A stretch of 60,072 bases of DNA, counting the filler, from Sluysia triapertura (taxonomy: Eukaryota), in the NCBI GenBank assembly GCA_046118255.1. It is 5 parts of 5 records of this genome, joined end to end, with 100 filler letters (N's around TTAATTAATTAA, not from the genome) between each part and the next. Parts side by side here need not be neighbours in the genome. Positions count along the whole stretch, not along the records: positions 11,175 to 24,507 come from JBJNIA010046125.1; 4 more parts are not named here. The stretch is one strand, 5' to 3'. Below the pieces are notes generated by a model, which did no database searches, had not been told where the DNA came from, and saw only the letters and a program-made list of their open reading frames with translations. Shown here in pieces: positions 5,641 through 24,507 of this stretch. Within the stretch, counting starts at the first letter, position 1; every line of letters starts with the position of its first letter. The translations under genes and the position numbers were made by a program.

Positions 5641-5838
5641 GTATTTCTCATTATTTTATTTCGATTTAAATATTTTATATGCTTCTCCTACCATTTCAGT
5701 TCATCATCTCGCCTCTTCTTAATTCTTTAATAATATTTAACTTATTCTGTTATCCCTAGTCATTACTCTTACATCTACCCTCTTCCTTCACCAGTCCCAA
5801 CATATCTCCGTTCGCCAAGAAGTCCTGTCCTCAAGGAC
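5641..5838 (-). mobile_element. Gypsy-like LTR fragment with upstream PPT-region junction
   Basis: Minus strand reads CTTGAGGACAGGACTTCTTGGCGAACGGAGATA then TGTTGGG (TG at 5802). Homology to the 10016-10163 copy stops exactly at this TG/CA. AATAAA lies inside on the minus strand. Confidence 0.6.
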
Positions 5839-6673
5839 TATAAGCAATTACCTATATATACATAGACAAACAAGGAAAAGAAATTAAAGATGAATAATTT
5901 ATCATCGCATTTTGTTACAATGTTTGATAACAATAAAAGAAACACTGGGGCTTCATATAAGTTAGATATTGGCGCATCATTGCAGTACGACTCTACACAC
6001 GTCCTGGAACCTATATTTCATAAAAAAGAAGAAAAATACATAAACATAAAGTTTACAGAGAATTTAATATGGTCAATTGAATTATATTTAAAATTTTATT
6101 AATTTGTGAAGTTTATGCGTACGTAAAAACGTAAAATTACAAACTTTTAATTAACAAATGTACTTGTTTTTTCCACTAATGACTCCATTTGTGTAGTGAT
6201 CATAATTGTTTCCCGATTATTATGTTCAATGATTTTAATCGATTTTCTAGAAGTTGGCGTGTCTTTTGTCTTTTACTTACAAATGGACAAAGACACCTCA
6301 TAAATTTGACATGCGTTCTCTTTTGCAATTAAATTTCATCAATTTTAAATTTCATATGTGGGATTAATTTAGCTCAAAATTTATCAAATTACTTCCCTTC
6401 AATTTAATAGGTTAATAGGTTTTATGTATATATTATAAAGCTGCCGTTTTTTATTTAGCAGCTTCAAATGAAGGTAAATTACTTTGTGGTGAAGATATAG
6501 CTTACCTTTACACATAATTTATTTGTCTTTCTTTTTTCTTTAATTTTTATTATGCTTAGTGTCTTGTCTTACAGATTCTTATAATCTTCTATTACGCATA
6601 AATTTTCACATTCACTTACACATACACATACAGATTCATTTACGTGACAATAATTATACGTATATTTTTTTAG

Positions 6674-7125
6674 ATTACTGAACAGAAACTCATGGAGTTG
6701 ATCAACACCAAAGAAGAGGAGAAACAAGCAAGAAATTTAAAAGAACGAAAAGAAAAATGTAGGTGTGCAGAGGCTGCGGACTTCATTTTAAAGAACCTAC
6801 CTCACATTCCTAGTGAAAAGAAGGTGAGAAGATGTTAGAAGAGAGTAATTATTACTCTACGCAAGCAATTCAATACTGAATTGTGTCTTTTTGGCGGAAA
6901 CAAGATTACAGTTTTCGTAAGATGAAAGGAAGGACAAGAACAATGAACATTAAAAACACAATCACTTCTACATTAGCAAAAATGGCGCAAGGTGAGGAAC
7001 GTACAAAGAATAAAATAGAAATCGACTACAAAGGCCATCAACTCAGTGGCTTGGTGAAAGAATACCATTTTGCTGCGAATAATGCTTATTACGAGGCTCG
7101 GGGAATTATTTCCAGAAAAGTTTAA
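6674..7125 (+). pseudogene. Disabled terminal exon of an unknown gene (possibly a transposon accessory protein)
   Basis: Polypyrimidine-AG acceptor, then ITEQKLMELINTKEEEK... with one stop and one frameshift into ORF 6883-7125; less AT-rich than flanks; family not recognised. Confidence 0.4.
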
Positions 7126-8129
7126 ATATTCCATATATGATACTATTTATATATATTATTTGGTGTTTTAGTTTTTTATATTTATAATAGACTTTTATGT
7201 TGTAATATTTTTTTAATTTGTAAGAAATGTCTTAAACTTTAAAGAATTTTTTAAAAAATACTTGCTCAATTTTACAGGTTTAAATTTTTCAAATTTTAAA
7301 TTTAAAAAATTTATCTCAAAAGTTTGCTCAAAAAATTTTTTAATTTTAATTGAATTCCTTTTTGGTGTTTTTGTTACTACACCTTAATTTAGTTATTTTA
7401 TTTTATTGTTAAAATGCTTAAATTTAATGAGTTTAGCCTAAAATAACACTTTTATTTTATACTTTAACAATAAAAATATTTTCTCACTTTTAAAGATTTT
7501 ACTTTTTTGATGTATATTTTCAATTATTCTAATTTTTCAAACTTTTCACAATTACATCTAAAGGTACTCGATATATATCTTAATAAATTAGCACAATTAA
7601 TAATTAATTTTTGACAAAAGGGGACGATAAAATTCAAATATTTTAATATATTTTTGCCAAAAAAAGGAACAGAATAAAAATCAAATTATATACATAAACA
7701 CATTTTCTTATTTTGTATTTAAAAATTAACCTGGTATATATATTTTAAAAACACAATATACTAAGGTTTCCTTAAAATGGACCCAAAATTAAAAATAAAA
7801 ATCAATATATCCGATTAGTAATCAACATTACAAACTTTTTCAACATTATACAACGCCAAAAAAGTTAAAAAATAAAAATGAAACTCAAATTTATTCTATC
7901 AATTATAAGATAAAATGCATAAAAATTAATTATAGTATTAAATAGACAGATATACAGATAAACAGTAAAAATGTATTGTGTTTAGACTACCAGAAAGTTA
8001 AAATAAAATTTAGTTGATAGAATCATAATCATAATAATCACAAACATCAACAACCATCTCTCCAACATAAAATCGAAAATTTGTGATTATAATTGATGTC
8101 TGTGATAAAGTGACAGATAGTTACAATAT

Positions 8130-9652
8130 AGATGGTAATAGTGGAGGTGGCTTACGTGATGCGTTTATTTTATCTGAACACTATCATTTCCTCCAACAGA
8201 ATCTAAGGTAATCTTAACATCATCCTTTATTACTTGACCTTCATCGATTTATTTTTCATGAATTGTTGTCTCAATTTTGCCATCATCAATTGTAATATGC
8301 TTTTTAGTGCTACTTTCAAAAGTTTTCAAAGTGACACAACTATTCTTTAATAAAATTCATAATATTATCACCTTGATAAATAGATATTGTTCCAGAACCT
8401 TGAATAATTGCAGTTTCATTGCCTACATTATCTCTATTCTCTTCATTTAATTCTAAATCTGAAACATGAAACTTGTTTATTTACCTTTTTCATCACTTTG
8501 TCTGTGACCATTTTGAATATTAGATGTTTCAGGCGTAGCAACTTTTAAATCGGGACTTCCTTCAGTGACTTCCACAGATTGCTTTGACTGTTGAGATTGG
8601 TTTAATAATAGTGTCTTTATAATTGGTTTAAAATAGTTAATGAATATAATGGTTCTAAAGTGTGCTTACCATATACTAGTGGCATCAGTGACATAAAATG
8701 AACGGTTACCAACCATATACCAGATGATAAAATGAACATCACCATTGCTAACTTGACATAAAATTTTACTATCACTAGGGTTAATATTAAAATAATTTAA
8801 ATAATGTTTTTTGAGATTATATAAGGACAATCATAACAATATACTTATCAGTTTTTGCTGGGTTTAGACAAACCAATCGTAGCAGTAGAAGCAGTTCCAT
8901 CGACATTCTTCCGAGAATATTGACACTGTGATTCTTCCTGGCAGTAGCTAGTATCGCTCCTTTTGCCATTAGAACCGGATTTTTTATCATTATTTACTGC
9001 ATTAGCATGCTTTGATGTTGGTTTTAATTTCTTTAGTTTTCTAAAGGATTGATGCATAGATTTTCTAATTTGTTGACCTACAATCATAGAAAGTTGTGTA
9101 TCGCAATTCCAAGGTTTTATTTCTGATTCGTCCTTTTCGTTGATTTTTTCTTCATTCGATGTTTCTGTTTTTATGTTTTCCAAATACCGTTTCTTTAAAT
9201 AACCGCAAGATAAAATCGGATCAGAAATGCAGAATTCTTTAACTATATGCCATTTGTGTACTAGCACAAATTTACAGCTTGAATCTGTTTGTTTCATTAA
9301 AAATGTATAGTAATAAGAATTATAAATGTAATTGGATTTCAAGGAGAGTATCACTTAATTTTGTCATTATCTGTAACATCAACATATTTATCTTCGTGAA
9401 ATTCATAATGACAGATGCTTCTAAATTCATCTACAAAATCAATTTGTCTTCATTTGTTAACCAACTGTAAATCGATGTGTGACATTTTTCATATTTTCTG
9501 ACATCTTTAATTGTATGATCAGGTGATGTAGAATAGATCGCTATATAAAAAAATAACAAATATTATTATCAATATACATTTCCAGCTTTGTGAAATGGAT
9601 CATTAGCATGCAAATAGTAGCCTCTAAACAGAAAACTGTTGTACATGAATAC
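8130..9652 (-). pseudogene. Multi-exon orphan pseudogene with short introns (includes ORF 8848-9354)
   Basis: Coding-like blocks bounded by AG/GT signals on the minus strand (e.g. short intron at ~8458-8485), interrupted by stops and frameshifts; K/S/E-rich; family not recognised. Confidence 0.45.
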
Positions 9653-10015
9653 CTATGATAAGTTACAATTTTATTAATATTGTATATTACTTCTAAATCA
9701 TAAGCTTAATTTGTTCAAATGTTATTTAATTTATTTCAATCGACAAGCATTTGGACTCGTTCTGGAATATAATTAGATTTACCAGGTTTATTAAATAAAA
9801 TTTACAATTTTAAAGTTAAAATTTAAATCAAATTTAATTAAATAGACAGAATTCTGTCTTACATTTCATTCATTCAAATAAATTCCGCTAAGCGGAAGTT
9901 CATTAAATTGGTACAATTAAATTGGTAACTATTAAATTGGTATAATGATATTAATAATAATAATATAAAATTATAATAAGTCTAAATAATAATATGGATA
10001 GACAAAGTTCTTTGT

Positions 10016-10163
10016 GTATCTCATTTTATTTCGATTTAAATATTTTATATTCTATCCTACAATTGCAGTTTATCATAACGCCTCATCTTTAATAATGTTC
10101 AACTTATTCTGTTATCCTTAGTTTGACCTTTACATCCATCCTCATCCTTCACCAATCCCAACA
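10016..10163 (-). mobile_element. Second diverged copy of the same LTR fragment
   Basis: Aligns to 5641-5802 (TTTTATTTCGATTTAAATATTTTATAT...AACTTATTCTGTTATCC...CCTTCACCARTCCCAACA) and ends at CA. Confidence 0.65.
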
Positions 10164-11002
10164 AGACCTTGCATTGGAAATGCGATTGTAATTATATATT
10201 ACACCTTGTATTCATTTTATTTTATTAATAAAGTTTTCGTAGTTATTTTTGTTTAATTTGAGATACTAACCATTTTTAGTAACTTCCACTATTAAAAAAT
10301 AACATTTTTACGCAAGAGAGATTTATGCGATTAAAATATTTACTTAGATAAAGTATTTTTATACAGTTTAAATTTATTTCACGTAATTTTGACCCTGTTA
10401 ACTGTACCGTCACATTCGTAACAAAAGAAGAATTTGTTCTTTTAAGTGCATAGGAATTTCTTTTACAAACAAAATCTTGAAGCAATGTCATCTCCGTATT
10501 TAAGCCGTTGACTTCAAGCGAACCCGTAAATTATATTTATACTTTCTATAGTATAAGATATAAAAATTCAATAAATAAGTCGAATTTAAAATCGATGATT
10601 CGCAAAACCGTTCTGTATGGGCCAACCAAATTTTATCTCATTGTGTCATTTTATGTTCTGGTACATCTGGCTGACAGAACATACTTTTTTAATCTTAAAC
10701 AAAATAAAAAATGTTTATTGTTACCTGTTTTAGTATCCTCTTGGTTTTTATTTGATAAACAATTTGAAATTAGTCCGTATTCTTGTAAATAAATTTAGTT
10801 TTTATAGATTGATAAATAAATTAGTTTTTAGTCTTTATTTTAATTATATATTAATTCATTATAACTCAATGTAAATAAGATTCTTTATAAATATTCTTTA
10901 TAAGATTCTTTATAATCATTCATAACCCTATTCTCAATTTTAATAATAACTTAACACAAAACCAAAATCTTCTCTCTACAATTATATTATTTGATCATTC
11001 TT

Positions 11003-11004
<2 letters not shown>

Positions 11005-11074
<70 letters not shown>
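11005..11074. repeat. (ATT)n microsatellite at contig end
   Basis: Pure TAT run up to the linker. Confidence 0.95.
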
Positions 11075-11174
11075 NNNNNNNNNNNNNNNNNNNNNNNNNN
11101 NNNNNNNNNNNNNNNNNNTTAATTAATTAANNNNNNNNNNNNNNNNNNNNNNNNNNNNNNNNNNNNNNNNNNNN
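11075..11174. other. Artificial contig linker (N44-TTAATTAATTAA-N44)
   Basis: 100-nt spacer with a six-frame stop 12-mer at 11119-11130; same design as three other spacers. Confidence 0.97.
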
Positions 11175-11564
11175 TGTTTGTTGTTGGATTATTGTGAATG
11201 TCGAGTACATGTTTTTGGTGGATTAGTTAATGTAAATTGGTAATGTTGGGTTTAATTGTGATTTGGATGTTGTGGGATTGTGTATGTAGATTGATTTAAA
11301 CAAGTATGTAAAAGATGAATATATAATTGTTAAAGTATGATAAAAGGGAAGAAACGATATTAATGTTTTTATAAAATTTTAGTGGTTGTAAAGGTTGTCA
11401 CTATATTATTTTGATCTAAAAATGTTAGCAAAATGATTTTATTAGACGTCTGAGATTTTATAAAGATGAGTGTTGTAAATGATGTATTACAGTCTAATTT
11501 TTGTTTGTGTCGTTGAGTGTTATGATGATGTGATGTGTAGGTAGGTGTAAGCTGGGCCACCACA
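11175..11564 (-). mobile_element. LTR-like terminal fragment (TGTGGTGG family)
   Basis: Minus strand starts TGTGGTGGCCCAGCTT at 11564; strongly C/A-skewed; 11175-11300 is homologous to 39380-39500. Confidence 0.55.
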
Positions 11565-11565
11565 G

Positions 11566-12082
11566 GATGATCATATCGAACAAAGTCGTGTGTATTTTTC
11601 GGAAGTTAAGTTGAATGAACAACCACACGCAGAACTAGAGTTATCTATTGTTGTCATGATAACAACTCTTCGCAGACGTCTCATATTTGAATATTACCGG
11701 CATAATATGTCAAAAGTGTACACTGTATGTCAATCGCAAAGCCGTGAATACTCTGTTAGTTACTACCTTATTCTTTCTGTTAATTCTCCTTTATTGCTTT
11801 ATGTTTATTCAAGAAATCTGTACAATTTAATTGATAATATTTTTAAATCGAAAAGATGTGATTTATGATAGGGATATAAATCCTTATCTTATAATTGTTG
11901 ATAGGAATAGGCTGATTGTTAAAGCAATTGATTTCAGTCTTACGTGTGATAGTATGACTGCATTTCACTTATCTATGAAGAAAGTTACGTATCAAATGTT
12001 TCAATTTTATGAAGCAATTTTAATGTTTGCTTTTTGCAAGACACTGAATTTAAATTTTGCATTTTTCCTGGCTTCTATTTAA
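11566..12082 (+). pseudogene. Diverged intronless Ser/Thr kinase remnant, PIM-like
   Basis: HIEQSRVYFSEVKLNEQPHAELEL resembles PIM1 [23 protein letters not shown]. After a frameshift, YDRDINPYLIIVDRNRLIVKAIDFS resembles the HRDIKxEN...KLIDFG catalytic segment. The 5' end is cut off at the 11564 terminus. Confidence 0.55.
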
Positions 12083-12799
12083 CAAAATTGTATCAATGGC
12101 ATCGAAGTCATTTCATGTTTTTCAACAATTATTTGATAATTAACACTCAGAATGATAATACAACATTAGAAAACTATTTTTAAGGTGTGGAGGGCTTTTT
12201 GAGCTTTACTTTTAATAAGTTATTATTACTTTTATTTTAAAGTTTGTATTAAAAAATTTAAAAATTTAACTAAATTAAAACAATTTAACTTTAATTTCGA
12301 AACATTTAACCAACCAGAATTAATGCCTGTAAAAATTAACAATTTTTAAACATTAACAGAGTTTAATACTTTTATTAACAAAGAATAAAACATTTGAAAT
12401 ATATATATAGCAGCAAAGTAACGATGTATGTCTAGATTTTATTTCCTTCTTTTGCAACAAATTGTACTAATGCTGAATTTCCGGTTTCATACATTCTAAT
12501 AATATAAGCTTCAGCATCAATGTTTATTTTGCGTGATACATACAATATTGAATATTTAGTTTCATGAAAAAGATATTAACTATAACAATGAACAATTCAC
12601 CTGTATTAGATGTTGATTGTAATTCAACATACTTTGTATAAACTGATGTGAGCAAACATACTTCCCAATATTTATAAATAAATCCACTAAAAAACAATTT
12701 GACGAATTATTAGTTGGAAAACATGGATTCAAATTTATATTCATGGTAGTGTACGTAACAGGTTTGTACGATGCTAAATCAACTAGTTCAGAATTACCA

Positions 12800-12849
<50 letters not shown>
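12800..12849. repeat. (TAT)n microsatellite
   Basis: Pure triplet run; source of the poly-Tyr ORF. Confidence 0.95.
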
Positions 12850-12850
<1 letters not shown>

Positions 12851-12929
12851 ATTGCAAACTATTCTTATTACACATTATTAGTAATCATTATGATAAATAT
12901 GAAATATCGCATAACATTTCTAACTGAAA

Positions 12930-13894
12930 TAATTATAATAATTATAGTAACTCGGTAAACAAATGTATTGAGTGGATGTTCTAGTATGTACATCAGACAT
13001 AATGAATCAATGTTACAGTCAATAAGCATTTGAAATACTTGGCCTCGATCTAAATTGACAAGATGGTTAATAAGTTCCAATATAGCTAATCTAGAACTTT
13101 TCCCGCTACTTTTGCATTTTCTATATCTTCTCTTAGGGTATCTGCTTCTCTGCATTGTCTAATAGAGTTCAATATATGAATTAAGGCTTGAAAACATTTT
13201 AAAGAGACCGGCTCGTTATCAATGCCCAGTGAAGCTTTGGATAAAACTTTTCCAATTAGATCTCCTGACGAAAGCCACTTTAAATATTCGCTCAGTATAA
13301 GACTATTTTGAGGAAATGCTTTAATATATTTGAGCAGAAATTCAATAACCGAATAATTAGATATGTATTCAATTAATCTGTTGAGTATGCATGACGTATT
13401 AATTAAAAAAATGAGCATCTTTTTACCACACTGATGAGAAAGCATTTTGGCCACTTTTAGCACAAGGCTGCATGTTACTAAATTTATAACATATGGACTT
13501 GGTTTGATCAGAATCATCAAAACTATTGCTACTTTTTACAAGTGAAGTGGATGATCTGAGTAAAGGATTAAACAATATTTTCAAATATTTGTGATCTTCA
13601 GCTTGACATAGTGCTTCATAAACATTACTGACAAATGAAGAAAGAATTTCTGGTATTGTATGTTGAGGCCCAAAGTATATTAATCCATTAACTTGTGGTT
13701 TGAGCGTTTCAGTTAAAATATAAAGAATTGCTGTCAAATTTTCATCTTTAAGTAAAAATTCTAATAATGATTCAATCAGTGAATGAACTTCTGAAATTAA
13801 TGAAGTATATGAAAGAACTTCTTCTAATGTTACATTTTCTTTATCGAGTAAAACACTCAAATCAGAGGATTCATAAGTTTGTTTTTCAAAACAT
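12930..13894 (-). pseudogene. Intronless, diverged SAPS-domain (PP6 regulatory subunit, PPP6R-like) pseudogene
   Basis: ATG at 13894: MF*KTNL[fs]ESSDLSVLLDKENVTLEEVL resembles PPP6R [27 protein letters not shown]. It continues through ORFs 13423-13860 and 13086-13520 (YLKWLSSGDLIGKVL vs VLNWLNEEKIIQRLV) and 12868-13155 (SRLAILELINHLV...HPLNTFVY vs TRLNVIRLISSLL...YTWNNFLH). Several frameshifts and an internal deletion. Confidence 0.8.
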
Positions 13895-14519
13895 TATAAT
13901 TAAAGTAATTTTTAATACATTACCAAATGAACTATATTCATATATTGATTTATTTGATTATAGTCTTCTACTTAAACTGATTGAACTAATTTCTTTCTCT
14001 TTAACATTTACACTAGATGCATCATCTGTTATTTTATCGTGCAATTTCGATTGACTTTTATATTCATATCTACACTGCTAGTGGTCATATAAATTAGATT
14101 ACGTAATACCTCATTCTTCGATTCCGATATCAGCTCATTTTTAACACCATTATGAGGAAGAATAGGTTTTAAACTTCTTTGTAGATGGTAACTGAATAAA
14201 TTATTTGACCGTAATCCATTAGAAACATAATCTTTCAAATCTTGTTTCTCACTATTTAATAAAGTAATATTCTCCATAGAAGGTACAGGTGTGTATCTTG
14301 AGTAACCGCAGTATTCGAACAATTGACTTTCTATGAGACAGTTCAATTGAAATGTCGGAGTTATTAAAAGAACAAATTTTATAACAGATACCAAATGCAT
14401 ACTTTGTAGATTGAGACATACACAAGTATATGAATACACATATATAAACTGGAAAAAACAAAAGAATAAGAAGAAAGATTTATAATAAGGATAAAAAAAA
14501 TAATGATAACAACAACATA

Positions 14520-14770
14520 ATTATTATATGTTTTAAAATAATAGTATTGTTGATGTTAATATGAAAGTTATTATAAAAGTTATTATATGATAATCATATT
14601 ATAGAACAATAATTACAATAATTATTATATTTTAATACGAGTGGGATTATAATAACAATAGCTGTGGTTCATCATGTACAATGGTTATGTTTGTTTTTTA
14701 ATGAGTTTAGTAGTTTATTTAATGATTTTATGTGATGAAGTATGGATATATCCCATGTGATTTCCCTACA
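14520..14770 (-). mobile_element. LTR-like terminal fragment (TGTAGGGAA family)
   Basis: Minus strand starts TGTAGGGAAATCAC at 14770 and aligns over ~250 nt to 36106-36370 (shared AAACTACTAAACTCATT, ATAATAACTTTTATAATAA). Confidence 0.65.
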
Positions 14771-15129
14771 TAAGTAGCTCACTGTCTCCTAAAGATGATA
14801 TTTTTAAAATTTATCGATTTTTTTGGTAACAAAGAGTTTAAATTAAAAACTTATCACGCTTTACCGACAACGATGCAATATCAAGAATAGGTGAAAGTTA
14901 TTGTATGTTAGCACAGATATTGTTTTTTTGCAATGTACTGAATTTAAATTACGTTACGTAAAAAATTCGAAAATATCAACGGTAGAAAGTACTACGATAC
15001 AACGCAAAATTATGACGCCTCTGAAGAAGTCAGACAGTTCAATATGAATATGTTTTTACATTATGTTTAATACATGCGAAACTGTTTTATTTTAATTATT
15101 TTCTTAATATTGTCAATATTTTACCAATA

Positions 15130-15430
15130 ATGTAATGTAGTATATTTTACATTGATATCATAATATACTAATTTCGATTGGATTTTTAACCATATCTGTA
15201 CAACCAGAATGGCAGGCCCAATGAATCAAAATTAATCCTTTACGTCATGTCAAATTTATTTCATTTAATTTATCGAAACACTTCTTTTCTGTTTCTAATG
15301 AACTAATTGTCTCACTTTTATCAGTTGAAAACCTATAAAAATCGACTCCATGGTCATTAATTTCAGAATTCAAAACTTCCGAATGATGTATATCGTTCAC
15401 AGATTCTTCGTTTTGAATACTTACTTTCAA
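15130..15430 (-). pseudogene. Ankyrin-repeat protein remnant
   Basis: ORF 15245-15430 read through its stop gives EINLT*RKGLILIHWACHSGCTDMVK; after a frameshift, YDINVKYTTLHY. Two degenerate ANK repeats. Confidence 0.6.
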
Positions 15431-15726
15431 AATTCAGTAAGCATTGTTTTCAAATAACCATTAGATAACTTATCCTAGACAAGTAACTTAACTTCCATAG
15501 ACAATAAGAGATCACTGTCATTTAAAATCAACAGATTATAAACACAAATTGAATTAAAATAATTAACATTGAGTCTCGATAAACTTTAAGCTTGCCATCC
15601 ATCTAATGATATCAGTGGTGATAATAATAATGACGACAATCGTGAATTATAGTATTAAGTAAAAGATGATGTAAAATATGTACAATAAATAAATGGTGTC
15701 GTGAATTACTTAGTTGTGAAGGTGTA

Positions 15727-16328
15727 AAATACAAGATGTACGAAGATGTATTTGATGACCTAAACAATGAGATTACAATTACGAATTTTGTTACATACGT
15801 TATGAATTATAAATCTATTATGCAGTGAACCACCACATCGACAAATTTCGAAGGAATATATAATGAATAAAATATTTATGAATATAATTCAACCAATTGT
15901 TAATTAATATTATTTTGACATTTCTATTATTTCATATCGGATAATTCATAATACTAAGTTAAATAAATTACAAATTGTTTCATTCATGTTTTATTTAATT
16001 AGAGTTTATTTCAATTCAGATGTTTCTCTCTAGGTCGATGTAAATCGATTTACTTCAGTAATAATTTGAAATTGTGTATTCTCAACCGCTATGTTGGATC
16101 TCGATTACCGAAAACTTTATTTCAACGCACTACAGATTGGATATGGTACAAAGTGATATTTTAACTCATCTGACTTTATTAATCACTTTTTCTTAGAAGT
16201 TTTACTTAAATTGACCTTGATATTATATATTTAAAACCAGTTATAATATTTATTGTTGTAATTAAATTTTAGATGTTCAAATTATGATTTAATTTTTGTG
16301 AAATAAATTTAATTAAAATAAATTAAAT
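15727..16328. repeat. ~600-bp dispersed duplication, copy 1
   Basis: Same-orientation homology with 22070-22648, including the identical core TAGGTCGATGTAAATCGATTTACTTCAGTAATAATTTGAAATTGTGTATTCTCAACCG. Confidence 0.9.
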
Positions 16329-17257
16329 GAATGAGTTCATTAAGTATTCGACTTACTTTACAACTGATTAAGTTGTGAAGTTTAATGTTTTTTTGTGGTG
16401 AGTACCTTACAATCTTAGTTTTAGTCACTTAAGGGCTAAGTGGTAAGTAGCAATTAAGAAGAATTTAAGCGGAGGTATCTACAAATATTAAAATAAAAGA
16501 AGGTATATTTTTGATAATGAAAATCATCTTTCTTATAAGTTAGAAATTAAAGAATTCTTTTTTGTGCAAAATTTTTAAATAAATTATAAATATTTTCTTT
16601 TCTCTTTTATAAAATCAGCAATTATATGTTAAGTAGTATTTTACTACCGTATTGAAAAAACGGTATCCTTAATAAATTTTTACAATTTAGCAAAATTTTT
16701 ACGTCTATTTTTCAATCGAGTAAAATCGGTGAGCCTTACAATAAATAAAAATACAATAAATTATAAATACTTTAAAGAAGTTTGATATTATTATTTTGTA
16801 ATCGTTATAATTAAAATTTGAATAATATAATTTACAACGCCTATTAAATATGGTTGTTCAATTTTAATGAAAATTTTATGTAGGATTTTACTGTCTCATT
16901 AAAAAAGAATTACTTAAAGAAATCAAACTAACGAATAATTAATGTAAAATCAGAACTGGTTCCATCAATGTAAACAAAAATCTAAATGTAAACGGTAATC
17001 CAGCAAACAAGATTTTTCAGAAAGAGAAATTTTAAAATATTATAATAATGTTAAAATAATGTTGTTTTTGCGTGAATTGTGATTCTGTTTATATCAAAAT
17101 CTGGTGACCTTGAATGTAGAAAAATTGATAGTTTTAAATAAGGAAAGAATAATTTTTTTCAACTTTGATTTGGATTAATTTTAGTTTTAATTAATTTTTT
17201 AGTTTTAATTTATTACAATAATTTATCACAATAATAATTATAATAATAACAATAATA

Positions 17258-17306
<49 letters not shown>

Positions 17307-18379
17307 TTAAAATCAATAAATTATATATAATGTTACTTATGTAGAATTATTTTTAGAATTAATAACATAATAACTGCATAAATATATACATTGTACATGT
17401 ACATGTTGGCATATACGTGTTGACATAACTTTCTCATACGGAAAAATTAGTCTCTAATTTTAAAATAAATCGTACTATTATTCAAAATCAAAATCATCAT
17501 ACAATAAAGTAATTATTGGAAGATCATCACTGCACGTAAAAAATTCATTATCAGTCAGAATTTTTCCAATAACTATAAATTCGTCACTACAGAGTTCATC
17601 GTTACTTTCTGCATCGAAGTCCACATTTGGGGATGTATCTTCTGTTTCTTGGTTCTATGTTTCTTTATTTGCGTGGATGCTATCGGCTGTCTTTTTGTAG
17701 TTTCTGCTAGCACTGTTGTTCTCTTTCTTTCAGTCGGTTCCGCTGGTAATTTCGTAGATTTATTTTTATTTATTGAGTTTTTGATATGTTATTTTTATGT
17801 CGCCTTTGAGGTGGTGAAAAAGAAATAGGTTTAGCAAAATGGAAAGAATCTGTGCAGGATGAGGTAGAAGGAAGTGAAGAATAAGAAAAAAGAGGAAAAG
17901 AAAAAGAAGAAGGAGGAGGTACATTTGAAGAATTAATTAATTTTGAGTCGTCATTTTGTGGCAATAAAGATTCAAAATGAGAAATCAAATCTTTGGCGTG
18001 TTGTATAAACGAATCAGGAAATGGAAAGGGTACCCTAATTTTAAAACGTTCCGTGCTTTTAATATGAGGTTAAAAGATTCTTGGAAGACTAAATTTGTGA
18101 ATGTAAGATTGACAATTATGATGTCAGATAAGATTGCCACCAGTACTTTGTCCTAAAGAGCTGTTAACCAGTACTGGCGGATATCCGCTATATCTTTAGA
18201 ATTAATAAGGTCAATTTCTGCAGTTAATATAGAAACTGAGAAACTTGAAAAATAATCCATAGACACATATTTCTTTGTGTCTCTTTACTCATTAAATACT
18301 TTCTTAATATTTAGCATATATATTAGACTATATATTTTTTCTGATAAAATTTCAACATTTTCAAGGACACTATGAAACT

Positions 18380-18655
18380 CCTCATTAGGTGCCTTTTTTG
18401 CAAAGGTGATCTTGTCATTCAATACTTGAAATGACGACTCATCAGTAAAACATAGTTGATGACTCCGATCATCCTCATTTAAATTTTGGTGTTGCTTAGC
18501 TTTGACTGATCATCTATGGTGTCATCCCACTCGCAAACCATTGTCTGCAAGTCTCCTTCTGATTGTTCTGATACGAAAGTGAATTTCACAATCTAGCTGC
18601 TTCTGCAATGTCATACGATTAACAGTAGAAAGTCTCACCACATGTCTGTCATTTA
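18380..18655 (-). mobile_element. Tc1-family transposase remnant
   Basis: DRHVVRLSTVNR...RTIRRRLADNGLR...KQHQNLNEDDRSHQLCFTDESSFQV: Tc3-type HTH plus the first catalytic Asp motif (FSDES-like); no TIRs found. Confidence 0.75.
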
Positions 18656-21600
18656 TCGCGATTTAGAACATAGCTATATTATATATCACTTTTTGTATAT
18701 TCTACATAATATTTCGTATCTTACACATTCAATAATGTACAAATATTAAGAAAACCAAATAAAAACATAATTTTTCTGTTTTAGTCTAATAATTTGACCA
18801 TTGAACACATTAAAATCATATAGCAGTGCTTACAATTCGTTCTTAGTCTCTAACTACACGCGAAAACCGTTTCTCAGTATACAGCTTCATCAGAACTTAT
18901 TTCCTATATAGTTCCATAAAATATTATTATTAACTTTTTCTGCGCCTTTAATTATACTAATTATTGTAATATTTAATAATACAATTATAATAATATTTAA
19001 TTATGCGATTACAGTAATAATATTAACTTTTTCTGACTTCGTTACATTCTTCGACGATTTATTTTCGACTCCTGAATGAATTTGATTTATTTGTTTGGTA
19101 TTTTTAATTTGATCATCTTTATTTCATTATTGTTGCATTATTTTTCATTTCGATAATTAATATTATCATCAAGATTATTAAATGACGGTTATACAATCAT
19201 TTCTTCTAAAGATTATCCTTGTCGAAGATGGATAAGTCGAAACTGTAAGAATTGGATTGATAAAAATTACTGAATCATTATGTAATGTCGATTGAAAAGA
19301 TTTGTGAGTTCGAATGACAAATACTTTGTGTTGTGCAGTATATAAGATCAGTGAAGTAACACTTCACTGTTTCCATAGTATTATAAAGGTCATACTTGGT
19401 AAAATATTAATTTACTTTAATTAAAATTAATGTCAAAGAGCGGTTGGAAAATAGATTAATGTAGACTGTGTTAAATAAATAAGATTTCAATGCAAATTAT
19501 TTATACGGACTTGGAGTCGAGGTAGTACTGGCAAACTCGTATAGGTATTTCGTAATGTGGCTTCTTAATGTAATGTAAGACTTTTTTCGATCCTACTATG
19601 AATTTGGGTATTAAATTTACTTTAGATTTATCAGAATTAAAGTCTAAAATTCTGTCTTAATCTTTGTGGCCCATAAAAGTCATTGTCACATATATTGAAT
19701 TAAGATTGAAAACATGATGAACATGCTTATGGTCTGGAATTAACATAATTATGCAATCATCAAAAACGCTTTCAAATTCGACATTAAAAGTTGCATAAAA
19801 TCGCAAATCAATTGCTCTAGAAGGGTAATCAAACTTTATTATAATCAAAACTGAATATATATAAAAGATATAAATATTTAATATTATTTAACTCAACTAA
19901 TGTTCCTTCTCTCTAGAATTATATTCTGAATACTTAAACATATGTATTATTTCCCTTAGAAATAACTCTTTAATATATCACTTTGTGCAAGATCATAAAA
20001 TTAACCAACTAATCTTAATTTTAATCTGGTAAGAAAATATCCAATTGAAAGCATTTAATAAGCTTTCCTAATTTAATTAAATAACTTTTCAAATTCGTAA
20101 AATCAACTCAATTATAAGACACCTAAATTCAATTATAAAAACCCTCAATATTAATTCACTTACATAATCATTTAAACTCTTAACTTTTAATATTAATTTA
20201 ATTACAAATATTTTATTATTAATTCAATTAGTAATAACTTTAATTCTACAAATTAATAAACTCAAAATAATAATAATTTTTATTAAAAAATAATTATATA
20301 AACTAAACCTTTTACATCAATATTATATAACAAAACCTATGAGATTAATAATACATTAAAAATTAAAAGAATTTTCATGTACAAATATTAAAATTTCTTT
20401 TAATATACAAGCATATTTTACTAGAATATTGTTCAAGAATATGTTACTAGTTGTAGTGTCCAACTCCCGCATCAACGACTAACACATGCAATCACAAATA
20501 TCCATTACATATTACATCTTCGCCACATCTTACAAACATAACAACACCTAAAATGTAACACACTTTAAACATAGTACTTCAACATACCCCAACTTAAATA
20601 GAAAGTAATATAATCACATTACGGTAAATTACCACTTAACACCACTTCAATCCGCCAATATCGCCCTACTCAACTACTCCAACATCTTGTCATTCGCTTT
20701 TTATTACTATTATTGTTATTGTATCACAATCAAATCGATGAAAGGGCGCAACGTGTCAAAGTATACGTTTCGAGAAAGAGAAATTCTAAATATTACGGAT
20801 GTTTGATTATTAAATAAGAATAAATGCATTAATGTTTATTATTCAAATGGTTGATTTATATACATTGAACAAATTGATATATTAGGCTTTAAATCTAATA
20901 CAATTATGTATTTTAGTAAGAGTTTAAGATTTAGGTTTCTTTTAATTCTTCTTCATAAAAAGGATGAAAAACTTATACAAATGAAACTTACTACTAATCG
21001 TGGAAAGAGCAAATTATGGAATTCTTGTGTTTAGAAATTGATAATTGTTCAACTGATGTGTGAAAATATCTTTAACTGATCTGAATCGTTACTAGTTTCG
21101 TCCTTGTCAAAACCTAAAACTAGTCTTCAAAAACGAATTATGCAAAGAATGAGAGTGCAATTAAAAAATTGTGTGTAATGTATGATTTATAACTAATTTT
21201 ATCGTTTTATAAATAATATTAAAAATAACATTTAGAAGTAATAGGAAAGAGTATATTATTTGAGTAAAATATTCAAAAATAATTAATTAAGTTATAATGA
21301 TGTTTATTATTTTTATTTTTAAAACTTGATATCCATGTTTGTAATAGTATTCTAATTTGATTATAATGCATGTTTAAAGATAGTAAAGTATTTGAAAGAA
21401 TTACAATAACTACTGAAATAAAATAAGTCTTATAATTCAAATCAAAGATAAAATGGAGATCAGTGACACGCTTGTTTTGTCTCTGTTCGAGATAAATAAT
21501 CTATATTTCTTTTGAATATAATTGTGGTGATTTAATATGAAAGTCTTCTGATGTTTTAACAAACACGCATTTACATATTCATTTAATTTTGCAAAAACAT

Positions 21601-22069
21601 GTCACAAACCATTTTCAAATCTTTACTCAATTTTCGGAACAATTTCGAACCTCGTATATCTTCAAAAGCATGTCGAGGTTAAGTCAGAAAATTCATGAAA
21701 TTATAAATTCAAAACAAAAATAATTAAATAAATTTAAGAATTAAAAATTAATTAATATTAATAAATTTTTTAATAAGTTCTGCAAAGAATTTAAATTTTG
21801 TATTTTATATTTTTGTTTGTTCTAAAATTAAAAATTTAAATTTTTTTAAACTTCCTCTTTAAGTTTTATAAAACAGTGTCTGAATTTGGTGGAAAAATTC
21901 ATAATATAAATCTGTTGCAAAGCAATGATCAACATGATCTTTATTATAAGTCAAATAATGTTATATCTCAATGATCAATAATTTAAAATTACTATTTGGT
22001 CAATCAAAATATATTAAAAATGATGTGTAGGTAGATTTTAGCAATGAATTTCATTTCCTCGTAATACTG

Positions 22070-22648
22070 AAATACACGATGTGCGACGAACTATTTGATG
22101 ATCTAAACTTATGTGATTAGAGTTAAGAATTTTATTAGATATGTTTTGAATTATAGATTTATTATGCAGTGTTTCTTCAGTAAGATTTGATGATATGAAA
22201 TGAACCATCAACAAAATGCAAAGGAATATATAATGAATAAAATATTCATAAATATAATTCAACTATTTATTAATTAATATGATATTTTGATACTTCTATT
22301 ATTCATTTCAAATAATAATTAGAGTTTATTTTAATTCAGATGTTTCGCTCTAGGTCGATGTAAATCGATTTACTTCAGTAATAATTTGAAATTGTGTATT
22401 CTCAACCGTTTTGTTGGATCGCGATTATCGCAAACTTTATTTCAACGTGCTACAGATTGGATGTGGTACAAAGTGATATTTTAACTCAGCTGGCTTTATT
22501 AATAACATTTTCTTAGAAGTGTTACTTAACTTAACCTTCATATTATATATTTAAAACCAGTTGTAATATTTATTGTTGTAATTAAATTTTAGATGTTCAA
22601 ATTATGATTTAATTTTGTGATATAAACTTATTTTAAAATAAATTAGAC
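22070..22648. repeat. ~600-bp dispersed duplication, copy 2
   Basis: Homologous to 15727-16328; overlaps ORF 22038-22262. Confidence 0.9.
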
Positions 22649-24035
22649 GAAAAATCAAATAACTTAGAATTAAATCGAAAACACTTGTGATAAATAATGA
22701 AAATTCAGATTTAAAAATGGAACTTTATAACTTACGACTTATAAAACTTATGCAATAAACTTAACTTAATGATTATCAGTAATCTTCAAAATCAGAATAT
22801 TCAAATCAAAATTTAGGAGATTTAATTTTTGTGAAATAAACTTATTTTAAGATAAATTTAGTATTCGACTTACAAATGATTGATAGATCGTTTGGTATGT
22901 AAATTTTATACGATTTAATTAGGTAAAAATAAAATACTTAAGAAAGTTCGTAATTTTAAATTAAGAAAGTACGTGATTGTTAAATTCTAAGACGTTTCTG
23001 CACAATATGAAAAAAAATCAAGATTTGCTATCGAATTACTTGAATAATTGATCGTAAATAAAATTTTTGCAGTTAAAATAGTAACTGAGGAACTCGCCCT
23101 ATGTACAATTCTTGAAAAATAATTCATTCTATATATAATACATTCTATATGAATAAAATTTCTGTATGTTTTGGATCTCACTAATTTTATCTATTATTTT
23201 ACCTTCACCATAATTTTTGGAGAAAGTAGTTATTTTCCAACATTTTACATTATTTTCCGCGACAAATGTCGGTTGTAAATGGCATATATTTATACACATT
23301 TGATTAATAGCACAAAATTGGCTATTGTGAAAGAAGGTAATTCTGTTTCTAATATATAAACGAAAGCTGAATCCTCTGTTAAACAGTTTAGTAGCTATAA
23401 ATACCCTCTTTGTAGACAGTTTCATGTCATTCTAAAAAGTTCCATCATGTTTTTATGTTTTCACAATGTGACATTAAATTTATCGATTGAGTCAGAAAAT
23501 ATGAGTATTACAAATACAGAGAAATTTTATCTGCAACAGAAATCAAGTTACCGAATACTTATCGAAATTACGAATCATGGCAATACCATAAAGAAATATG
23601 GAGTAGAGAAGAAATGAAGAAGAAGAGTATGTTCTTCCACTTTATAAACAATTTTTACATGGTTCAAAATAAAACAATCTGCAGAATTTAGAATACACTG
23701 TTAATTCATAATTTAATCATATATTAAACTTAGTACACGTTTGTGTAAATCGAATATAGACAAACAAATTCAATAACGTTATAAATATCGAATAGGTTTG
23801 ATTAATTTAATATTCCATGAATTTAATAATCAATTATTTGATTTTTATAGTCTGAAACACTAATAATTATTTCTTTTATTTATAAAATCGATTTATAAAA
23901 CATTTTAAGATTTTGATAAGGTTAGACTTGGTAATGTTAATTTTAACTGACACCAATTTAGTTGAGTATTGAACCTTTTAATTTTAATTTTAAAATTAAT
24001 ATAATTTTTATTTGCATCATTAAATCTAAGTTCGT

Positions 24036-24408
24036 TCAAGCGTTCGTTACAAATATGATGTTTAAAATTTTATGTCGTCTTATGGTTAAAAATTTAGGAA
24101 GATCAATTAAAAAGAAATTAACAATTATAATTTTATTATTTTTGCTGTTATAATTTAGCTTCGTCCAAGATTGATCATCTAAAATAAAATGGCAGTTTAA
24201 GTTAGAGATAAGATAAACAAAAATAATAATTACATTGTCGCTGCCATTATTATCAACATCATAAGAGCACTGTAAAATTTGCAAAGCCGATGGTGTCACC
24301 TTTTGATCCTGAAATAGTGCACAATCCACACAGTCAAGCTCACTTGGTTCATCTTCATTATCATTCTTGATTGAACAAATCTCCAACAAGACAAAAACAG
24401 CTACTTCT
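24036..24408 (-). pseudogene. Truncated paralogue of orphan ORF 37002-37652
   Basis: VLLEICS..LDCVDCALFQDQ..ALQILQ..NVIIIFVYLISNLNCHFILDDQSWTKL aligns with ALLEIYL..INCTDCLWFKDQ..NLQVLQ..NVIISFIHFVYNLYLHFILDDNSWGRL; N-terminus replaced by an insertion starting at 24409. Confidence 0.75.
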
Positions 24409-24507
24409 TGTAGTGGTCAACTTTTATAAGTTAAGATTAAAATAAATCTTACTAAAAATAACCTTACTGACAGCCATACTCTTTAACTATAAACACTACA
24501 CAATTTA
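24409..24507 (+). mobile_element. LTR-like terminus inserted into the orphan ORF
   Basis: TGTAGTGGTCAACTTTT at 24409, close to where protein homology to 37002-37652 breaks. Confidence 0.55.

Follow-up and report, generated by a model that had tools for sequence, protein, structure and literature searches.

Proteins of the SAPS family (PF04499), represented by Sap4, Sap155, Sap185, and Sap190 in yeast and by PPP6R1-3 in human, are regulatory subunits of the phosphatases PP6 and Sit4. The SAPS domain adopts a helical-repeat fold, and residues 1-355 of human PP6R3 do not bind PP6c, whereas residues 1-513 do (PMC2765987). A stretch resembling the beginning of such a gene is present in the window, that is, the whole 60,072-nt stretch of Sluysia triapertura DNA analysed here (assembly GCA_046118255.1), within a piece from record JBJNIA010046125.1 (positions 11175-24507), which is AT-rich with GC contents of 21-30%. 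The coordinates 12930-13894 given by a first-pass annotation of this DNA proved correct, with the feature lying on the minus strand. Like the members of the SAPS family, the remnant contains a part (segment 2 in Table 1) that matches the start of the SAPS model as well as SAPS clusters of the ESM Atlas, and it is all-helical in a low-confidence structure prediction, as is the SAPS helical-repeat domain. It differs from them in matching only positions 10-94 of the 451 positions of the model, with a score below the gathering score, in being frameshifted, in ending after ~330 codons, in occurring in multiple copies, and in that a single-sequence search starting from the remnant reaches no SAPS protein.

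With processed pseudogenes, the remnant shares an intron-free coding sequence of ~1 kb which is disabled and evolves neutrally, as well as an A-rich (TAA)n array located ~100 nt downstream on the same strand. It has, however, lost its 3' part, in contrast to copies made by LINEs, in which truncation usually affects the 5' end, and it differs further in having several copies and no plain poly(A). Captures by Pack-MULEs and Helitrons resemble it in that a fragment of a host gene is found in several diverged copies flanked by far commoner repeats, and in that some contigs join the DNA on either side of the remnant as if ~2.6 kb had been inserted, but the remnant shows no terminal repeats, no GC-rich 3' hairpin, and no mobile-element domain. 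To our knowledge, repeats do not usually contain sequence derived from SAPS genes. It appears fairly probable that the locus is a dead, 3'-truncated copy without introns which comprises the first ~330 codons of a SAPS-family gene, coding for a PP6/Sit4 regulatory subunit, and that it belongs to a small family of repeats; it is a pseudogene of the ordinary type whose copy number is unusual, located in AT-rich, repeat-rich DNA. An intact coding sequence, already far from the canonical PP6R proteins, would have been copied without its introns and without its 3' two thirds, and this copy would then have been multiplied at the DNA level; neutral drift may have added only a few percent of divergence since, and the copy would have no function of its own.

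The SAPS-like reading extends from position 13894 to ~12952 and consists of 331 stop-free codons, summed over three frame segments, whereas stop-free stretches average 11 codons over the six frames of the piece 11175-24507. Its GC contents at the first, second, and third codon positions are 0.41, 0.31, and 0.215, respectively, and the difference between the first and third positions (0.193) exceeds the maximum of 0.17 among the 1242 windows and frames of this piece that served as controls. The coding signal is thus far above chance, and the open frames together with the GC periodicity show that the stretch was a coding sequence until recently. Another stop-free stretch of 163 codons lies upstream (14032-14520); it is devoid of coding periodicity, and no relatives of it were found by word search or in Pfam.

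Table 1. Features of the SAPS-like remnant and its immediate surroundings, in positions of the window.
Feature	Position	Strand	Basis or remarks
Possible original start, ATG TTT TGA AAA ('MF*K')	13883..13894	-	read directly from sequence; one base off the frame of the following reading
Segment 1, 131 stop-free codons, N-terminal to the Pfam SAPS domain	13501..13893	-	open frame
Frame-change window, one base, second frameshift	13488..13535	-	overlap of two open frames
Segment 2, 134 stop-free codons; residues 23-107 (nt 13424-13170) match SAPS model 10-94	13089..13490	-	Pfam and ESM Atlas
Third frameshift window	13089..13158	-	overlap of open frames
Segment 3, 66 stop-free codons, helical-repeat-like continuation, back in the frame of segment 1	12952..13149	-	open frame
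(TAT)16.7 microsatellite; gene strand reads (ATA)n/(TAA)n	12800..12849	.	~100 nt past the coding end
Moderate-copy stretch	12740..14080	.	summed contig depth ~90-400, one bin 1700

The first-pass annotation had described an MFWK start in which TGG was changed to TGA. The corresponding codons are indeed present, but they are out of frame with the SAPS-like reading by one base, so that the change from TGG to TGA would have to be accompanied by another lesion; it is simpler to assume one additional T in the T-run, which gives M-F-E-K. At the other end, the coding reading stops within an isoleucine run, and no SAPS continuation was found in any frame of 12950-11175, either among the stop-free stretches or in a Pfam scan. 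The copy therefore corresponds to roughly the first third of a SAPS protein, and the 3' part is missing. In between, the reading is continuous and leaves no space for introns across ~990 nt, which agrees with its previous description as intronless. A complete SAPS domain of ~450 profile positions is not contained in a remnant which ends after ~331 codons, and because residues 1-355 of PP6R3 do not bind PP6c, a polypeptide this short, even if it were translated, would probably not serve as a subunit of PP6.

Although weak, the SAPS similarity proposed in the first-pass annotation was supported by two tools applied to segment 2. The Pfam model of the SAPS domain matches it with E=1e-4, although the score of 21.5-21.8 bits stays below the gathering score of 25.6, and the match was obtained with fragments of 134-144 amino acids containing no read-through. 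In a feature search against the ESM Atlas, SAPS (PF04499) accounted for 12 of the 30 best named clusters, and SAPS clusters ranked first, the best of them (0.94) sharing 196 of 256 features; other phosphatase-regulator helical repeats followed behind. This search may be regarded as a recognition of segment 2 that is independent of the Pfam profile, and as moderate evidence for its assignment to SAPS. No SAPS match was obtained in Pfam for segments 1 and 3, nor any usable ESM Atlas match for segment 1, and segment 3 shows a weak Pfam match to the ARM-like Rcd1 (E=0.003); the collinear SAPS blocks noted previously are thus matched by tools in segment 2, but not in the two others. Segment 1 nevertheless carries what we take to be a block resembling the PP6R N-terminus (MFWK... 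LL.+E.VTL.E), and the match of segment 2 begins at model position 10, ~150 codons past an ATG, which is presumably where a SAPS domain should start. AlphaFold models of the single segments were unusable, with pLDDT values of 40-43. As judged from these sequence comparisons, a SAPS origin of the remnant is very probable.

The reading contains at least two, and probably three, frameshifts, and three single-base shifts represent the minimal set of lesions. Introns as a source of the frame changes were evaluated by listing all GT-AG pairs that restore the frame without creating a stop codon. None of them keeps a start codon at the first break, several exist at the second, in a number that chance predicts for this sequence, and the sole pair at the third (13195 to 13086) deletes part of the SAPS-matched stretch. 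Introns are thus ruled out for two of the three breaks and cannot account for all frame changes, so that either the copy is disabled or the assembly contains errors. Short homopolymers of A, T, or G are found at or close to all three breaks, which represent either true lesions of a single base or errors of the assembly; the read tables, which list the best-supported indels only, do not distinguish between the two. The earlier description of the copy as dead agrees with these frameshifts, since GT-AG introns do not repair all of them.

The distance of the remnant from known proteins is large. Among 1.84 billion cluster representatives, phmmer found no true relative of segment 2, but four matches to unrelated repeat-rich proteins, namely a repetitive protein without clear family, an nSTAND NTPase, a TIR protein, and a PEGA protein. 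Segments 1 and 2 gave no match in word searches, whose length limits excluded full-length SAPS proteins, sequence searches of the PDB returned nothing relevant, two metagenome scans gave no relatives, an exact-product look-up gave no record, and Rfam gave no match. Because no close annotated or predicted protein was found, the identity to canonical SAPS proteins must be low, in line with the low identity to PPP6R noted in the first-pass annotation. About 5% of all possible substitutions in the reading would create a stop codon, and no nonsense codon is present within the three segments; with at most one stop in 993 nt, the neutral change accumulated in its own lineage since the loss of constraint probably amounts to less than ~8%. 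The frames are too open for the protein distance to have arisen neutrally. As the source coding sequence would itself be far from all known SAPS proteins, the PP6R of the host lineage is probably very divergent too.

Copies of the stretch were identified in public DNA runs. Run X1 (organism A) contains 36% of the words of the stretch and run X2 (organism B) 5%. When contig pieces of X1 were placed on the 4 kb from 11400 to 15400 at a likeness of at least 85%, 3098 pieces were obtained, of which 225 are at least 99% identical to the window, 648 fall at 95-99%, 1411 at 90-95%, and 814 below 90%. Within the SAPS part, for which the summed depth is given in Table 1, two perfectly matching contigs have depths of ~9-19, and each listed variant site is covered by 1-7 distinct X1 contigs that are all unlike the window. 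The SAPS stretch represents a family of repeats whose size, when the contig depths are summed and a depth is assumed for a single copy, comes to roughly 5-25 copy equivalents, with identities of 85-99%. Related copies are present in a second organism, as run X2 carries related pieces at 87-89%. The first-pass annotation had pointed to multi-copy relatives as something to look for, and several diverged X1 contigs (85-99%) do align to the stretch. With transposon-borne gene fragments, the locus has in common this multiplicity, seen as several contigs per site in X1 and as pieces in X2. One X1 contig with a depth of 103 carries a single C in place of the 34 nt at 13555-13588, a net change of -33 nt that keeps the frame.

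Among the listed differences between the copies inside the reading, 10 of 11 are non-synonymous, versus 74% expected without selection, in a small sample chosen by support. By our own arithmetic, the probability of observing at least 10 non-synonymous differences out of 11 would be ~3e-4 at an omega of 0.2. This proportion points to a neutral decay after copying, in which the copies drift without selection acting on them.

Several other explanations of the locus have to be weighed against this background. It is improbable that the stretch represents an unrelated helical-repeat ORF, for example of an unknown mobile element, which resembles SAPS by chance or composition. Such a reading would agree with the Pfam score below the gathering score and with a control in which the 139 stop-free stretches of at least 33 codons in the piece were all scanned; SAPS was hit there once (1.4e-4), but DUF4078 equally well (E=1e-4) and PMSR at 7.5e-4, so that the Pfam E-value alone is not conclusive and E-values are somewhat generous in this composition. 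It would also agree with the failure of phmmer (segment 2 against the big library) and of the PDB search to recover any SAPS protein, with the low ESM Atlas "recognition" value of 1828 for segment 2, and with the repeated nature of the stretch. Against it, two different methods, Pfam and the ESM Atlas, name the same family, and both the distance of the match from the ATG and the N-terminal block are what we would presume for a PP6R. Still less probable is a live gene coding for a short SAPS-N-terminal protein of ~360 residues, with the three breaks explained as homopolymer assembly errors. The segments are indeed free of nonsense codons, the breaks all lie near A, T, or G runs, and three single-base shifts would suffice, but an error rate of three per 1 kb would be high, the differences among the copies are neutral, the reading stops within isoleucine codons without any SAPS continuation, the stretch was found in no RNA run, and its surroundings are decayed repeats.

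More weight is due to an independent intronless SAPS-like gene, or a small family of such genes, that diverged from the host PP6R under long selection and of which this member died recently, although we consider it unlikely as well. This had been the view of the first-pass annotation, and the part of it that stands is that the frames are too open for a neutral origin of the distance. In its favour, segment 2 has no real relative among the 1.84 billion representatives or in word searches, yet its frame is nearly clean and strongly coding-like, and one length variant among the copies preserves the frame. However, a young copy of a divergent host PP6R gives the same facts, and divergent PP6R are usual in fast-evolving lineages of 25% GC; the data do not distinguish a divergence that took place in an independent gene from one that had taken place in the host PP6R of such a lineage before a recent copying. 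The predominance of non-synonymous differences (10 of 11, P ~3e-4 at an omega of about 0.2) also argues against long selection, and the ~330 codons do not extend over the whole SAPS part that human PP6R3 requires to bind PP6c (PMC2765987). Very improbable, finally, is a lineage-specific family of intronless, N-terminal-only SAPS-like genes spread either by a mobile element that escaped recognition or through recurrent retroposition, in which some members are intact and expressed and the window contains a freshly broken one; if such a family existed, its members might serve, for example, as PP6 modulators or as a source of small RNA against the host PP6R.

If regarded as a truncated pseudogene, the fragment matters little as it stands in its repeat-rich surroundings, and it should not be annotated as a PP6 regulatory subunit. 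A SAPS repeat family could mark a duplication or capture mechanism operating in this genome, and a divergent host PP6R bears on the annotation of this AT-rich genome. Should intact and expressed members exist, a fragment of a phosphatase regulator would have been amplified as a gene family.

As to the way in which the pseudogene was copied, a retrocopy of a prematurely ended transcript followed by DNA duplication agrees with the A-rich array and with the intron-free reading. Reservations on a retrocopy origin come from the truncated 3' end, the missing poly(A), and the weak candidate for a target duplication; the sole candidate is the 7-nt sequence TGGTAAT, found at 13925-13919 and just past the (TAA)16 array, which could be due to chance. 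A second (TAT)n array of ~16 units is located at 17256-17302 on the same strand as that at 12800-12849, and the borders of the two are partly similar (59 nt at 93%, mostly the array itself). Because such a second array is present, the one next to the remnant may be an ordinary microsatellite.

The features found around the remnant do not support a transposon cargo, an idea touched upon in the first-pass annotation. Terminal inverted or direct repeats above chance were not found around it (alignment scores of 28 and 25, versus a shuffle mean of 28), nor was a GC-rich 3' hairpin of the Helitron type, and Pfam gave no transposase, reverse transcriptase, or other mobile-element domain beside it. 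No Helitron, TIR, or LTR borders were accordingly recognised for the remnant. Three X1 contigs join 12158-12181 directly to 14785-14859 and thereby skip ~2.6-2.7 kb including the SAPS part. These joins suggest that the remnant and its neighbours form an insertion in another repeat, of which no termini were recognised.

Both flanks consist of commoner sequences. The repeat depth is 500-2800 at 11400-12340, while the summed X1 depth reaches 5,700-16,000 at 14214-14481 and 59,000-115,000 at 14482-14749, compared with ~10-19 for unique contigs. The two latter intervals contain an AT-rich short repeat with many partial matches and loose ends, and this abundant repeat next to the remnant could be a SINE, a MITE, a satellite, or low-complexity sequence. 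Farther away, 15727-16331 and 22070-22651 are direct repeats of ~600 nt which are 78% alike and 6.3 kb apart; they are either old LTRs or two copies of one repeat, and no recognisable retroelement domain was detected between them by a Pfam scan of the stop-free stretches. The scan of the 139 stretches also returned weak matches to PAN_1 (two stretches, 0.004), Med22, and Arm_3, and a search for a few short MsrA motifs gave none. On the minus strand at 18288-18662, two stop-free stretches resemble degraded Tc1/mariner transposase sequence, for which Pfam gave only a match to HTH_Tnp_Tc3_2 at 18525-18662 (E=0.031).
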